IMG/VR virus record: IMGVR_UViG_3300042317_001568 | Coordinates: 62,001 to 126,000 of that record | Reading direction: 5' to 3' (one strand) | DNA length: 64,000 nucleotides | Shown here: piece by piece, positions 5,413-58,071 of the stretch | How the letters are laid out: each line of letters starts with the position of its first letter | Position numbering within the stretch: the stretch's first letter is position 1 | Notes under the pieces: model-generated | Seen by the model: the letters and a program-made list of their open reading frames with translations, nothing else | What the model was told of the DNA's origin: nothing | The model's database searches: none | Position numbers and translations under genes: made by a program

Positions 5413-5457
5413 AGAAGGAGCGGGCACCAAAACCGGTGCTCGCTTTTTCTTAGCTAT
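5413..5457 (+). terminator. Intrinsic terminator followed by TTAGCTAT
   Basis: agaaggagcgggcacc-aaaacc-ggtgctcgctttttct. Confidence 0.75.
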
Positions 5458-5464
5458 CGGTGAC

Positions 5465-5493
5465 CTAAATTAGGCGCGATTTTGCGTCATATT
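5465..5493 (+). promoter_or_regulatory. Promoter-like motif CTAAAT-N17-CATATT, copy 2
   Basis: Repeated motif upstream of the AAA+ gene. Confidence 0.75.
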
Positions 5494-5529: not shown

Positions 5530-6369
5530 ATGAGTATTGCAGACGGAGTGTGCGATCTTCTGCCCGGCTATTTCGCTCGACGAGGCGAGGCCCTGCTGGC
5601 CAGATGGATGCACGAGGCCCGCGGGAAGGAACCGCGCGGTGGTTTACTGGTCGGCCCGCCCGGCACCGGCAAGACGTTCTTTGCCGACGCGTTCGCCCGC
5701 GGCCGCAAGGCCGAGCAGGTGTTTATTCCGTGCCACCCGTGGCTCACGAATGAGGAGCTACATCAGGGTGTGGACATCGGCCGCGTGGCGGTCGGGGTCG
5801 AGCACGCCGACGAGGCGTACATCGACGGCCAGCTGCTGCGCGCTGTGCGCATGTCGCACGACTGCGACGTGGTTATCACGTTGGACGAGGTCGAAAAGGC
5901 TGGGTCGCGGTTTTACCCGCTTATCCTCGACTTCTTGCAGAATGGTCGGGTGCCTGATGCCCGCCACAAGCTGCACAGCGGCAACACGGCCCGGATGTTT
6001 ATCGTCCTGACCGCGAACGAAGAGGTTGACCTGCCCGAGGCCATTAAACGGCGCTGCTTTCGGGTAAACATGGGCTTTCTGCCCGAGCATGTCGAAACCG
6101 ATGTGCTGCGCAAGCAGACAGGCGCACCGGGAGGGGCCTGTCGCATCATTGTGCGCATGGCGAACGCAATCCGGCAGAACGGCGACTCCAAGCCGTCCCT
6201 GCAGGAGCTTCGTCACTTGCTTATGGCGCGAGACCTGTGCGTAAGCACGGACGACGTAGCCACTTTGATCGAAGCGTTTCTTGTAAAAGAAACCAAGGAC
6301 ACGGAGGCCCTTAAACAGGCATTCAGCAAACCCGAAGCTGTACTGTTCGGGGAGTTCAAAAGGAAGTAA
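5530..6369 (+). CDS. AAA+ ATPase, MoxR/AAA_5-like
   Basis: Walker A GPPGTGKT, Walker B ITLDEVEK, sensor I LTAN, Arg finger EAIKRRC; AAGGAG RBS favours ATG 5530. Confidence 0.85.
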   Translation: MSIADGVCDLLPGYFARRGEALLARWMHEARGKEPRGGLLVGPPGTGKTFFADAFARGRKAEQVFIPCHPWLTNEELHQGVDIGRVAVGVEHADEAYIDGQLLRAVRMSHDCDVVITLDEVEKAGSRFYPLILDFLQNGRVPDARHKLHSGNTARMFIVLTANEEVDLPEAIKRRCFRVNMGFLPEHVETDVLRKQTGAPGGACRIIVRMANAIRQNGDSKPSLQELRHLLMARDLCVSTDDVATLIEAFLVKETKDTEALKQAFSKPEAVLFGEFKRK

Positions 6370-6371
6370 CC

Positions 6372-7781
6372 ATGAGCCTGACACTGCGGAAGTTGCAGCG
6401 AATGCTGTCGAAGTCCGTGAAAACTACCCGCGATGTTAGGTTTACGGACCCGCGAGAGCGGGCAGAGTTCGCGGAGTTTATCAAGGGCGTATACGCCGAA
6501 GAATTTACGAGCCCGCTTCTTCGACAAGGGCACGTTCGCGAGAACTGCCCGTGCGGTAATTGCGGCCCCAAAACCGTGAACAACATCACGGCGCTTATTG
6601 ACCGGTTGACAAAGCGGCACGGCCATCGTGCCACACTCAGCCAGTTGCTGGAGCCCAGAAATAAGTCTGGGCGGGCTCAAGGCGGTAGCGGTAAATCAAA
6701 CGGAGCACCGCAGGAGGAGCCCCAGCAGGCACCTTCTGGCGGGTTTGATCCTCCGCCCGCCAAAGATACGGCCGCGGAACCACCGCAGCCCGAGAACTGG
6801 GAACCAACTCCCGCCGCCCAAGAAACTCCAAAACCAAAAACTGAGCGTGAAAGGCTTTCCGACGAGGAAAAAGATTTACGTGCGCGGTTAAAGGAATTGG
6901 AGAAGCAGAAAGCCGCCGCGAAAGCACGCGGCAGTCTGCAAGCTTCGGCGATAGATGTTGTGATAAAGAAAGCCAGAAAGCAGCTGAAGGACGCCCGGAA
7001 ACAGGCATCTAAAATCAGCGGCGTTGCTGGTATTGAGAGTGCTCCGTCGTTGGAGGCTCGACGACGCGCAGCCGGCACACATGGCCGCCTGCGGGTCGTT
7101 CCGCCTCAACTGCGGAACAAAACAGCGGAACTCATTAATAAGTTAGTGCATGAAAGCGGCGCAGCTGGTGACCGCCTCACGCCTATCCCAATTTTGAGTG
7201 CGCGAAAAGTTGTCAAGAGGATGCTTGTCCGGCGTCCACTTGGTAACGCGTTTAAGGAGGACAGCAACGCCGGTCGTCCCGTCACGCTGTTCTTGCCCGA
7301 CGTCTCGCCGTCTTGCGCCCGACAGGCTCAAGCGGCGTGTGACGTCGCTAATGCGGCAGGGTACGCTGGAGTCTCTGGCTCTGACGTACTGGTTTTCCCA
7401 CACTCTAACGGAGAGGTGGAGGAAGATTACGTGCCGTGGTTTAACGGTCGACCCAACTTGGCAAACTTGACGAAAACAGAAGCGCTGTTTTCCGAGATAA
7501 CAAGCGGTCGGTCGCGGTATAACATCCGGATAGTAGTCGCCATTGGCGACCACGACGCCGCGGAGTTGTATCGAGAAATCGCGGCGCTAAAAAAAGTGGT
7601 GCGATTAGTGTGGTTGCACAATATTCCAGTGAGTCGTCGTCGACCCACGGTTGTGCCGTCTGACGCCAATAACTTGTACGGCGAGAATTGGACAGCTGAA
7701 ACACGCAACAAGGTCACAATGATCTACGGTTGCGTTGATCAGGCGTCTATTCTCGGCGGGCTAGAACTGGCTCTTTCTTAA
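6372..7781 (+). CDS. vWA-domain partner of the MoxR-type ATPase
   Basis: MIDAS-like DVSPS and VVAIGD; Pro/Glu/Gly-rich linker; begins 2 nt after the ATPase stop. Confidence 0.65.
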   Translation: MSLTLRKLQRMLSKSVKTTRDVRFTDPRERAEFAEFIKGVYAEEFTSPLLRQGHVRENCPCGNCGPKTVNNITALIDRLTKRHGHRATLSQLLEPRNKSGRAQGGSGKSNGAPQEEPQQAPSGGFDPPPAKDTAAEPPQPENWEPTPAAQETPKPKTERERLSDEEKDLRARLKELEKQKAAAKARGSLQASAIDVVIKKARKQLKDARKQASKISGVAGIESAPSLEARRRAAGTHGRLRVVPPQLRNKTAELINKLVHESGAAGDRLTPIPILSARKVVKRMLVRRPLGNAFKEDSNAGRPVTLFLPDVSPSCARQAQAACDVANAAGYAGVSGSDVLVFPHSNGEVEEDYVPWFNGRPNLANLTKTEALFSEITSGRSRYNIRIVVAIGDHDAAELYREIAALKKVVRLVWLHNIPVSRRRPTVVPSDANNLYGENWTAETRNKVTMIYGCVDQASILGGLELALS

Positions 7782-7836
7782 GCGCGCACCATTAACAGCG
7801 GCACTCCGTTTTACGCCGCAGGAGGTAATTTATGCA

Positions 7837-8411
7837 CTGGCCTAGATAAAGCGATGCCCGGGGTAATCAGCCCGGAGCCTTCGTCTGCAGGGATTAATTG
7901 TTTTCCATGTAGCCGAAATAAAGGGACGACAAACAAACACGGGTTCTTGAAGGCTCGTGAGGACAAAAGTCGTAAACATAGCGGAGCTGTGTCCGACGCT
8001 TTGAGGGGACAATGGCAGGTTAGTCCCACAGGGGAGACACGAGACTTTATTGCGGAACGTCGCCTAATAGCGAAACGCCGCGACATCGTTTCGGTCAAAC
8101 CAGACCGGCCCCGGATTTTGTAACGCGGTTTGCTGCCTAGAAGCGGCCGCGCATATCCCCTGTCGAAAGCGCGCTCGATGGGGGGTCGCTCAATCTGGGA
8201 CTTTTCGTCTGTGCGAAGGTCACGCGGGCCGTCGTGCCCGCGGAATATCACAGAACTATACTAACACGCGCTATTCGTCTAGTCCGGGTAGCGTAGGCTT
8301 TCTCGGTGCGCCTGCTTTAAGCGGTTGCCGCCACGTTCGGCGAGCACTGAGCCACTTCCGCTGAGCAATTGGCGGAGGGGGGAATCGAAATGGCCCCTTT
8401 GGGGCCGTTTC
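7837..8411 (+). ncRNA. Large structured non-coding RNA candidate, family unassigned
   Basis: Long-range closing helix 7837-7853/8269-8287 and at least 10 nested helices; wobble pairs read as G-U on the + strand; no credible CDS. Confidence 0.7.
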
Positions 8412-8420
8412 TTTAGCTAT
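8387..8420 (+). terminator. Intrinsic terminator followed by TTAGCTAT
   Basis: gaaatggcccc-ttt-ggggccgtttc-ttt. Confidence 0.75.
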
Positions 8421-8443
8421 CAGCGCTCCAGTAGAATAATGGT

Positions 8444-9673
8444 ATGACGTACCAAAAAACTTTTCCGTTCCGCCGTGTTTCCGTGGATCACATGGTCCGC
8501 GGAACAACCCGGGTTTGGTGGCAACTTGAGCCGCTATTCCGCGATCCCGGGCCGCATGTCTACCAGCTGCAAGTCAGCAAATCTGGTTTAACAAACTCTT
8601 CAGACTGGGCCGATGTCGGGCCGCCGTTAACAAACGCTTATGTGGCGTATGACTCGGCGTGGCGACTATCCGGATATTCCCTGCTTACGCATTATCGCGT
8701 TAAATTAACAACGCCAACAACTGTCTATGTCTCGCAATCTGCAGGTTGCTTTGGCGAGTTAAACGAGCGCGACTGGGTGTTGTCGCAAGAAATTATCCGT
8801 AAAGAACAGCTACGGCATCAATTTGTGTCGACGCCCGGGTATCTTATTAAGGCTATGCGTTTCGGAAAGCCGTGCCCGCGCTGCCGAGAAAAGCTGACGC
8901 AGGAAGTACTCGACTCGTATTGCCCGGTCTGTAGCGGCACTGGTTTTGAGGTCGGCTATTTTCCGCCGCAGCCGTTGCAATGCTGGGATTTATCTTTACA
9001 GACAATTCAAGAAGAAGGCGATGCGCAGGCCCGCGGGCCCACACGCGACAACGCCGTTGTCCAAGCACGCGTAATTGGTTTTCCGGCTTTAAATAAATAT
9101 GACGTGTGGGTAAACGCCGCCAGCGACGAACGCTGGATAATTGACACAATTCAAGTTGTCGCGGCTATGAGGAATGTGCCGCTGGTGTATCAGGTGCAGT
9201 TAAACCTCGCGCCGTTTACAGACGGTATTTACACATTTGAAGTCGGCGGAGAGTCGCCCACGCGCGACCCGTCGACAGAAGGCCCTACTGTTGGGTGCGG
9301 CGATGTCATCTTAAACCATAACTACAACGGCAACGATCGGTACGCCTACCTGTCTCCGACGGGGTGCCCAATCAGCGGCGCTACGGTATACGTGTTTAAC
9401 AGAAACGTATATGACGTAAACGGCCCGCAAATTGCCCGGACTATGGCGCTCGCAAAAACGAGCACAACCGCAAACGGCCGCTGGGTGCAGGGCGTTAATG
9501 TAAATCCCGGCAACTACGCTATTCTTTATGAAAAGACTGGCGAGTTCGGCCCAGACGTAGATTTTGTAACTGTGGTTGCGCCACCGCCTACCGCATCTGT
9601 TAAAACAGCGACACCCGCAAAGAGCGCCCCGACATGGCCGACGAAAAAAGAAAACGACTTCTGGACCATATAA
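8444..9673 (+). CDS. Putative head-closure/neck protein with CxxC...CxxC insert and C-terminal beta-sandwich
   Basis: CPRC...CPVCSGTGF; lies between the adaptor and tail-completion genes. Confidence 0.55.
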   Translation: MTYQKTFPFRRVSVDHMVRGTTRVWWQLEPLFRDPGPHVYQLQVSKSGLTNSSDWADVGPPLTNAYVAYDSAWRLSGYSLLTHYRVKLTTPTTVYVSQSAGCFGELNERDWVLSQEIIRKEQLRHQFVSTPGYLIKAMRFGKPCPRCREKLTQEVLDSYCPVCSGTGFEVGYFPPQPLQCWDLSLQTIQEEGDAQARGPTRDNAVVQARVIGFPALNKYDVWVNAASDERWIIDTIQVVAAMRNVPLVYQVQLNLAPFTDGIYTFEVGGESPTRDPSTEGPTVGCGDVILNHNYNGNDRYAYLSPTGCPISGATVYVFNRNVYDVNGPQIARTMALAKTSTTANGRWVQGVNVNPGNYAILYEKTGEFGPDVDFVTVVAPPPTASVKTATPAKSAPTWPTKKENDFWTI

Positions 9674-57998: not shown

Positions 57999-58071
57999 GC
58001 CGGTGTAGCTCAGTTGGTAGAGCCGCTGATTTGTAATCAGCAGGTCGTCGGTTCGAGTCCGACCGCCGGCT
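57999..58071 (+). tRNA. trnT: tRNA-Thr(UGU), CCA not encoded
   Basis: GCCGGTG/CGCCGGC acceptor stem; D arm GCTC-AGTTGGTA-GAGC; anticodon arm GCTGA-TTTGTAA-TCAGC; T arm GTCGG-TTCGAGT-CCGAC. Confidence 0.95.

Follow-up and report, generated by a model that had tools for sequence, protein, structure and literature searches.

A conserved ribosome-binding site and three- to five-codon frame at the head of an apparently new structured RNA of uncultivated jumbo phages

A Shine–Dalgarno (SD) sequence followed by a frame of three to five sense codons (the mini-ORF) stands at the head of what is apparently a new structured RNA of about 600 nt, conserved across a family of uncultivated jumbo phages. Both elements lie in a 64-kb stretch of DNA (64,000 nucleotides, here called the window) exactly as the original prediction, made from the sequence of that stretch, had given them (Table 1). 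The SD, the spacer, the start codon, the three to five sense codons, and the stop codon are kept in all 19 distinct homologues with a recognizable 5′ domain. Because the homologues keep the SD and the ATG and no relative carries a longer gene at the site, deliberate ribosome loading is the best reading of these observations, and the combination of a conserved strong ribosome-binding site with so short a frame suggests that a ribosome is deliberately loaded onto the RNA. The site is quite probably translated. As an explanation of its function, we favor the view, to which we give close to an even chance, that translation of the mini-ORF parks ribosomes at the 5′ end of the RNA, where they would serve as stabilizer and insulator at the tail of a putative AAA+/vWA operon.

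Table 1. Positions of the mini-ORF, the elements of the structured RNA, and the upstream genes in the window
Feature	Positions	Strand	Remarks
AAA+ ATPase gene (AAA_5, MoxR-like)	5530–6369	+	Pfam AAA_5, E 4e-13; first gene of the putative operon
469-aa gene with C-terminal vWA/MIDAS-like domain	6372–7781	+	stop 38 nt before the SD
Small hairpin GCGGC/GCCGC	7798–7819	+	abuts the SD; local folds; weak feature
SD AGGAGGT	7820–7826	+	family consensus GAAAGGAGG
Mini-ORF ATG CAC TGG CCT AGA TAA (MHWPR-stop)	7832–7849	+	5-nt spacer AATTT between SD and ATG
Helices P1 and P2	7856–7917	+	P1 7856–7861/7872–7878; P2 7880–7892/7905–7917; RNAalifold, CM alignment
Domain P4–P5	8014–8110	+	holds the invariant 4x4 internal loop
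Domain P6–P8	8111–8198	+	includes hairpin P7 (8124–8134/8142–8151)
Hairpin P9	8268–8294	+	loop UCUAGUC (8278–8284); stem covaries (RNAalifold)
P10 and long hairpin P11	8302–8381	+	P10 8302–8312/8339–8351; P11 8352–8364/8369–8381
Intrinsic terminator GGCCCC TTT GGGGCC + GTTTCTTT	8392–8414	+	probable 3′ end of the RNA

Conservation of the mini-ORF

The sample in which conservation was assessed consisted of 19 distinct sequences with a recognizable 5′ part of the RNA, drawn from about eleven clades; the homologous loci that were located number 106. Across this sample the module is retained down to 36% identity of the neighboring protein. The SD core GG[A/T]GG is present in 18 sequences, the remaining one (L026) having GAAAGGAA, and the spacer between the SD and the start codon is constant in length at 5–7 nt while its sequence is free to vary, as are the flanks. 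The start codon is ATG in 18 sequences and GTG in one; the frame comprises four sense codons in 14 sequences, five in four, and three in one, and it ends in TAA (13), TGA (3), or TAG (3). The type and position of the stop codon differ between clades while the length of the frame stays at three to five sense codons; a reading begun at an arbitrary position in these RNAs would run into a stop after three to five codons with a probability of 0.10 per lineage. Only about half of the sequences have a further stop, in a different frame, shortly after the first.

The encoded peptides are MHWPR (window and L019), MDWP (L021), MSWIR (L022 and L024), MIWH (L028), MHDP (L029 and L030), MNEH (L031), MPFP (L010, L013, L014, L018, L059, and L060), MNFT (L034), (GTG)FT (L011), MTWP (L015), and MGTQ (L026). 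Across the family they tend toward x-W/F-P-stop, that is, x-aromatic-Pro-stop. The last sense codon varies (CCN, AGA, CAT, ACG, or CAA) and is AGA in the window, L022, and L024. Among the six sequences of the MPFP clade, 2 of the 15 ORF sites are variable, both of them third codon positions, compared to 6 of the 6 spacer sites and 11 of the 12 downstream sites. This substitution pattern is coding-like, which argues that the frame is read. The geometry of the module is conserved, the length of its frame is constrained, and the substitutions within the frame are codon-like.

The heptamer AGGAGGT alone is not above chance, with two copies in 64 kb compared to 3.35 expected. GGAGG followed after 4–9 nt by ATG occurs seven times in the 64-kb window, each time on the + strand. 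Six of these sites start genes of 143–1069 aa, the sheath-like gene included, and the seventh is the mini-ORF. Since the other six sites start genes, the signal of the mini-ORF is of the kind that this genome uses for well-expressed genes. It is this combination that carries information, and the comparison of homologues weighs most.

The original prediction had made its case depend on conservation of the SD and the mini-ORF in homologous loci, and this is borne out in 19 of 19 sequences with a recognizable 5′ domain. Neither of the findings that it had named as fatal, namely homologues without the SD and the ATG or an intact longer gene in relatives, was encountered among them: no relative has a longer intact frame at the site, and all have three to five codons. 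In L027, a very distant homologue, the 3′ domain of the RNA is recognizable and the 5′ domain is not, and there is no SD or mini-ORF; thus, the RNA can exist without the module. The stretch L027:1535–2185 keeps the 3′ domain, the terminator, and the promoter-like block described below.

The structured RNA

The mini-ORF lies at the 5′ edge of a gap of 662 nt (7782–8443) that holds no conserved ORFs and separates the 469-aa gene from a 409-aa gene, and every relative has a gap of 580–770 nt in the equivalent position. In the five closest relatives, identity is 78% for the gap, compared to only 56–89% for the flanking protein. Its + strand folds better than shuffled sequences (z of −2.99); an RNA encoded on the minus strand was rejected, as its fold z is −0.26. 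The RNA totals about 600 nt with the mini-ORF, and its folded part (7856–8414) accounts for about 560 nt.

RNAalifold applied to nine sequences gave 122 pairs, of which 64 show compensatory changes. P1 is the first folded element and follows the stop of the mini-ORF by 6 nt in the window and by 6–9 nt in clades A–D. In the CM alignment of the 5′ module, 92.7% of the cells are paired, compared to 79.2% in shuffles (0 of 500) and 28–51% when the alignment is slid, and double changes are seen in 10 of the 15 pairs. The CM of the 5′ module misses the distant clades, save for a weak match in L034; the SD and the mini-ORF persist in distant clades although the architecture of P1 and P2 changes. About 11 of the 19 homologues form the small hairpin preceding the SD, with pairs that differ between them (GCGGC/GCCGC, GCGGU/ACCGC, GGCAU/AUGCC, CGAC/GUCG, and GUGC/GCAC), and local folds gave no such hairpin in L011, L013, L014, L018, and L034.

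The conserved cores common to all 19 sequences are GGGACGUC...GAAACGCC, GCUUUCUCG, and GUUGCCGUCACG..CGGCGA..GAGCC, and there is no or almost no variation in GGGACGTC and GAAACGCC across the 19. The 4x4 internal loop of the P4–P5 domain reads AACG (8056–8059)/AACG (8074–8077) in the window, the 5′ strand being GACG in other homologues, and is set within GG(G/A)ACGUC...GAAACGCC. P11 is closed by a GNRA tetraloop, which is GCAA in the window and GAAA or GUAA in relatives, and a GNRA-capped hairpin is found in most sequences. Most sequences also keep the terminator hairpin with its T run, and a G+C hairpin with 7–10 T after it on the + strand is seen in every homologue.

Neither the window nor the 11 homologous loci searched gave a match to any family of Rfam 15 at the gathering score. 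The families whose models gave no match include GOLLD, ROOL, OLE, raiA, HEARO, the group I and II introns, RNase P, 6S, and the riboswitches; at E-values up to 10, only SraG, SNORA57, and P36 were returned, all at chance level. A tmRNA was considered and rejected, as ARAGORN finds only a tRNA-Thr (57999–58071) in the window. A literature search found no published description of this RNA. Two ORFs are located inside the RNA, one of 89 aa (7854–8123, +) and one of 146 aa (7811–8251, −), neither of which has family matches. The 89-aa ORF is broken by a 1-nt indel in L019, a relative with 89% identity, and is 9–48 codons long in others. Both ORFs are probably not genes.

Pairing of the mini-ORF and the P7–P9 contact

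According to the original prediction, the mini-ORF forms one strand of a long-range helix that closes the RNA. Such a helix is real in the window, where positions 7833–7847 of the mini-ORF pair with 8277–8290 through 13 bp (−15.1 kcal/mol) and the pairing is used by the MFE fold. However, it is not conserved. When projected on the alignment, the 13 pairs are kept completely in L019, to the extent of 12 in L022 and L024, and to the extent of 10 in L021, whereas the other 14 sequences keep 0–6 of the 13, which is the chance level. No compensatory double changes are found in this helix. In the consensus folds the mini-ORF is unpaired, and neither the SD nor the ORF has a conserved partner across the family. 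Single-sequence partition functions gave the SD an unpaired probability that is about average, with predicted partners that differ between sequences. A local hairpin between the SD and the ORF in the MPFP clade (GGUGG/CCAUU) is perfect only in L010, L059, and L060 and is mismatched in L013, L014, and L018, and a CUAGGG after the stop, which competes with the 5′ strand of P1, is found in some distant clades only.

The proposed 3′ partner of the mini-ORF (8277–8290) falls in hairpin P9, the loop of which is complementary to the P7 loop GCCUAGA (8135–8141). This complementarity shows covariation in about ten clades, the loop pairs being CUAGA/UCUAG, CUAGACGA/UCGUCUAG, GGAUAG/CUAUCC, GGUAG/CUACC, GGAUCAG/CUGAUCU, GGUUGG/CCAACC, GGAUUG/CAAUCC, GUGUGGGG/CCCCACAC, GUCAAG/CUUGAC, AAUAGG/CCUAUU, and UAGGC/GCCUA. 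The pairs were taken from structure-defined loops and by direct reading, and the alignment clips the loops in distant clades. The complementary segment of P7 has a constant position, 54–64 nt after GAAACGCC, in most sequences. Since the partner of the P9 loop covaries clade by clade, the conserved interaction appears to be a kissing pair between P7 and P9, either intramolecular or intermolecular. The CUAG core in the window is palindromic, so that intermolecular pairing (oligomerization) is conceivable. At most, pairing of the mini-ORF gives an alternative structure confined to the clade of the window, in which the ORF mimics the P7 loop.

Genomic context and transcription unit

The window is part of a contig of about 205 kb that encodes a sheath-like gene and many large proteins of no assigned function, which points to an uncultivated jumbo phage. 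Searches of GenBank phages gave no DNA or protein match to the window, and the vWA-like 469-aa protein has no relative among 185,579 genomes. A search of genomes with the RNA core pattern gave 17 matches; nhmmer aligned no more than the pattern stretch in eight and nothing at all in the rest, and all were dismissed as chance. Searches of IMG/VR with three patterns of the RNA or promoter returned already known contigs and chance matches only, and a metagenome scan contributed three loci.

The pair of genes for an AAA_5 protein and a vWA-like protein is always directly upstream of the RNA. The likely true start of the AAA+ gene is the ATG at 5530, which is preceded by GAAGGAG, and AAA_5 homologues of 274–284 aa are found in every related locus. 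The 469-aa protein has no Pfam or PHROG match. It carries a DxSxS motif (D310/S312/S314) that is invariant in the alignment, and its AF2 model (pLDDT 72) gave weak top matches to MIDAS/vWA folds in Foldseek, none better than E 2.5e-3; no RNA-binding domain was found in this fold comparison. The SD follows the stop of the vWA-like gene by 10–39 nt in 16 of the 17 loci measured.

A terminator-plus-promoter-like block made up of a terminator hairpin, a T run, TTAGCTATC(A/G)G, 5–9 nt, and TA(G/A)A(A/T)T precedes the AAA+ gene at 5436–5472 and recurs at 8392–8437, after the RNA, where it is kept in all relatives. No comparable promoter or terminator was found between the vWA-like gene and the RNA. 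Given this and the bracketing blocks, the RNA probably forms the 3′ portion of a longer transcript, and the unit likely consists of promoter, AAA+ gene, vWA gene, mini-ORF, RNA, and terminator.

Several further observations concern the surroundings of this unit. Between the hexamer at 8432–8437 and the ATG of the 409-aa gene lie 6 nt, and this gene has no SD, which suggests that its mRNA is leaderless; in some relatives a leader of 50–80 nt precedes the downstream gene instead. The N-terminus of the 409-aa protein (8444–8503) comprises five variable residues and then a conserved (I/T)FPFRRVSVDHMVRG in almost all loci, the exceptions being three loci with YPF and L015 with a longer N-terminus. 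The resemblance of its FPF to the MPFP peptide is probably accidental. The tRNA-Thr (UGU) at 57999–58071 is the only tRNA in the window. A TTTTAG(A/C)TATCAG...TAnAAT block is present in two or three copies in IMGVR_UViG_3300044614_002195 (L104/L106) and IMGVR_UViG_3300044646_001937 (L077/L087), contigs of about 200 kb in which the RNA was not found within the stretches examined, and may be a promoter type common to a wider phage group.

Possible functions of the mini-ORF

If ribosomes are parked on the RNA, as we favor, a host ribosome would bind the extended SD, start at the ATG, make a tri- to pentapeptide, and terminate 6–9 nt before P1, which begins just past the footprint of an initiating ribosome. 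Given how short the frame is, the 16S 3′ end could reach the SD at every stage, so that ribosomes might dwell or cycle at the site. C-terminal proline slows peptide release at a stop codon, and the x-aromatic-Pro-stop ending may retard termination and thereby lengthen the dwell. Ribosomes in this position would shield the RNA from 5′-end-dependent decay, comparable to the action of the STAB-SD and of ribosomes on erm and hbs leaders. Furthermore, ribosomes coming off the vWA gene 10–39 nt upstream would be captured and discharged before invading the folded domain. Initiating ribosomes are described as blocking RNase J1 in the case of Bacillus subtilis hbs (PMC5737220), and the cry3A STAB-SD acts on an RNA processed from a longer transcript (PMC12970973). 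5′-end protection is a reasonable function for the mini-ORF. Actual translation, ribosome dwell, and a stabilizing effect are inferred. A pure stabilizer acting like the STAB-SD could do without a start codon, a stop codon, or a constrained peptide, and the constraint at the peptide level is therefore only loosely explained by ribosome parking. Further points against parking are that the single-sequence partition functions do not mark the SD as especially accessible and that L027 lacks the module.

An alternative is a translation-gated fold or arrest-peptide switch, in which occupancy of the mini-ORF decides whether P9 and the P7–P9 contact form and hence whether the active fold is reached. 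The 13-bp pairing of the window cannot coexist with P9 and the kissing pair, it is kept at 10–13 of 13 pairs in L019, L021, L022, and L024, the mini-ORF mimics the P7 loop in this clade (CUGGCCUAGA compared to CUGCCUAGA), and the peptide is constrained, all of which would suit such a switch. Nevertheless, we consider it unlikely, as the 14 sequences with 0–6 of 13 pairs conserve the mini-ORF equally, clade A shows no compensatory double changes, and the SD and the ORF have no family-wide partner. A leader-peptide switch, one of the roles suggested in the original prediction, has no conserved alternative helices to act through, and a cistron that it might regulate on its own transcript is not apparent; the next gene carries a separate promoter-like block and lies beyond about 550 nt of folded RNA and a terminator with 7–10 T, past which some read-through is conceivable. 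Gating of folding, another of those roles, is conceivable only as a lineage-specific add-on. The mini-ORF might also dock the host ribosome so that the RNA body, with or without the AAA+/vWA proteins, acts on or with it, for example in sequestration, reprogramming, or RNP assembly. The joining of a strong ribosome-binding site and a large conserved fold, together with genes for an AAA_5 and a MIDAS-like protein in the putative operon, speaks for this idea, and the x-W/F-P-stop tendency is compatible with a long-lived terminating complex. The structural matches to vWA are weak, however, and L027 lacks the module. When docking is specified as proceeding through a slowly terminating x-aromatic-Pro-stop, with an RNA body, perhaps remodeled by the AAA+/MIDAS pair, that acts on or uses the ribosome, we hold it to be less likely than the gated switch, and the general form of the idea ranks somewhat lower again.

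Improbable, and below any form of docking in our estimate, is a minigene of the lambda bar type, the repeated translation of which would drop peptidyl-tRNA, tie up tRNAs (Pro, Arg-AGA, and Thr), and perturb host translation. The strong SD and the three to five codons fit this anatomy, the frames of the window and of L022/L024 have AGA as their final sense codon, a tRNA-Thr is encoded by the phage itself, and shorter minigenes sequester tRNA more strongly (PMC2490762). Yet the invariable fusion to a folded RNA of 550 nt would be left unexplained, and the last sense codon varies. More improbable still is that the site is untranslated, the purine-rich block and the nucleotides next to it serving as RNA-structure or protein-binding elements with an incidental ATG and stop. 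In thermodynamic folds the SD is often paired with some other segment, and since the whole RNA is highly conserved, conservation alone is no proof of coding; against this, the predicted SD partners differ in every sequence, the spacer is constant in length and free in sequence, the start and the stop are kept while the flanks change, and the MPFP clade varies at third positions only. A remnant of a decayed longer gene, a hidden ORF in the RNA, or an exon 1 in front of a self-splicing intron might be suspected because the downstream 409-aa gene has no SD and an 89-aa ORF (7854–8123) exists in the window. These readings are hardly credible and were rejected: a longer ORF at this place is found in none of the relatives, a frameshift breaks the 89-aa ORF in L019, the models of group I and II introns give no match even at an E-value of 10, and a bona fide terminator precedes the 409-aa gene, whose ATG and N-terminus are conserved.

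Ribosome parking would place the RNA among phenomena that are familiar one by one, as SD-based stabilizers, minigenes, and short leader frames are all known already. To our knowledge, there is no precedent for a large, ornate non-coding RNA into which a conserved frame of three to five codons is built. A new RNA of the GOLLD/ROOL size class with a built-in, deeply conserved ribosome-loading site would offer an experimental handle, and a MoxR-like AAA+/vWA pair is tied to it in one putative operon. If our reading is true, the mini-ORF would be a rare natural case of selection on a frame of three to five codons, the peptide included, and would bear on the workings of minigenes, 5′ stabilizers, and very short arrest peptides. 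Should docking prove true instead, this would be an ornate RNA that engages the ribosome, and not merely a protected one.

Comparison with known systems

Compared to GOLLD and ROOL, whose structures have been solved while their function is not known (10.1101/2024.12.08.627333), the phage RNA is alike in its size of about 600 nt, its phage origin, its many covarying helices, and its loop–loop contacts. It differs in giving no match to their Rfam models, and GOLLD and ROOL have not been described with a conserved SD and mini-ORF.

In erm leaders, TnaC, and SecM, ribosome occupancy of a short frame matters more than its product. The mini-ORF resembles such leader and arrest peptides in its short frame and in the tendency of its peptide to end in aromatic-Pro-stop; it differs in that a peptide of three to five residues is too short for the tunnel constriction. 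Unlike an attenuator, the mini-ORF does not take part in conserved, mutually exclusive helices, the 10–13 of 13 pairs being kept in clade A only. Short frames within structured RNAs offer another comparison. The E-peptide of Tenson and Mankin, a pentapeptide encoded by a mini-gene in E. coli 23S rRNA, is reportedly cryptic in intact rRNA. Dual-function sRNAs (RNAIII/hld and SgrS/SgrT) encode 26–43 aa, and the frame of tmRNA has no SD or AUG. The E-peptide and the dual-function RNAs share with the phage RNA a short translatable frame inside a structured, otherwise non-coding RNA.

The lambda bar and synthetic toxic minigenes (PMC2490762) have in common with the phage module a phage-encoded SD, an AUG, a few codons, and a stop, and the mini-ORF falls within their limit of at most about six sense codons. 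Short minigene length is the regime of strongest peptidyl-tRNA drop-off and ribosome cycling (PMC2490762). The bar minigenes differ in being isolated sites without a large conserved RNA, and their effect is seen in Pth-deficient hosts.

The STAB-SD sequence, GAAAGGAGG, is identical to the consensus of the phage RNA family. It belongs to the cry3A mRNA of Bacillus thuringiensis (Agaisse and Lereclus 1996, as cited in PMC12970973). With the STAB-SD and the hbs leaders the phage RNA shares a near-perfect SD, which, to judge from the operon layout, would likewise stand near the 5′ end of a stable, processed RNA; in those systems a bound 30S subunit or initiating ribosome blocks 5′-dependent decay. 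An extended SD in a non-coding 5′ region is likewise found in 18 of the 19 phage sequences. The STAB-SD differs in acting without a start codon or an ORF and in heading an mRNA, whereas the phage module keeps an ATG or GTG and a frame of three to five codons in 19 of 19 sequences, with the start, frame length, stop, and in part the peptide conserved, and the RNA body that it heads is a non-coding fold.
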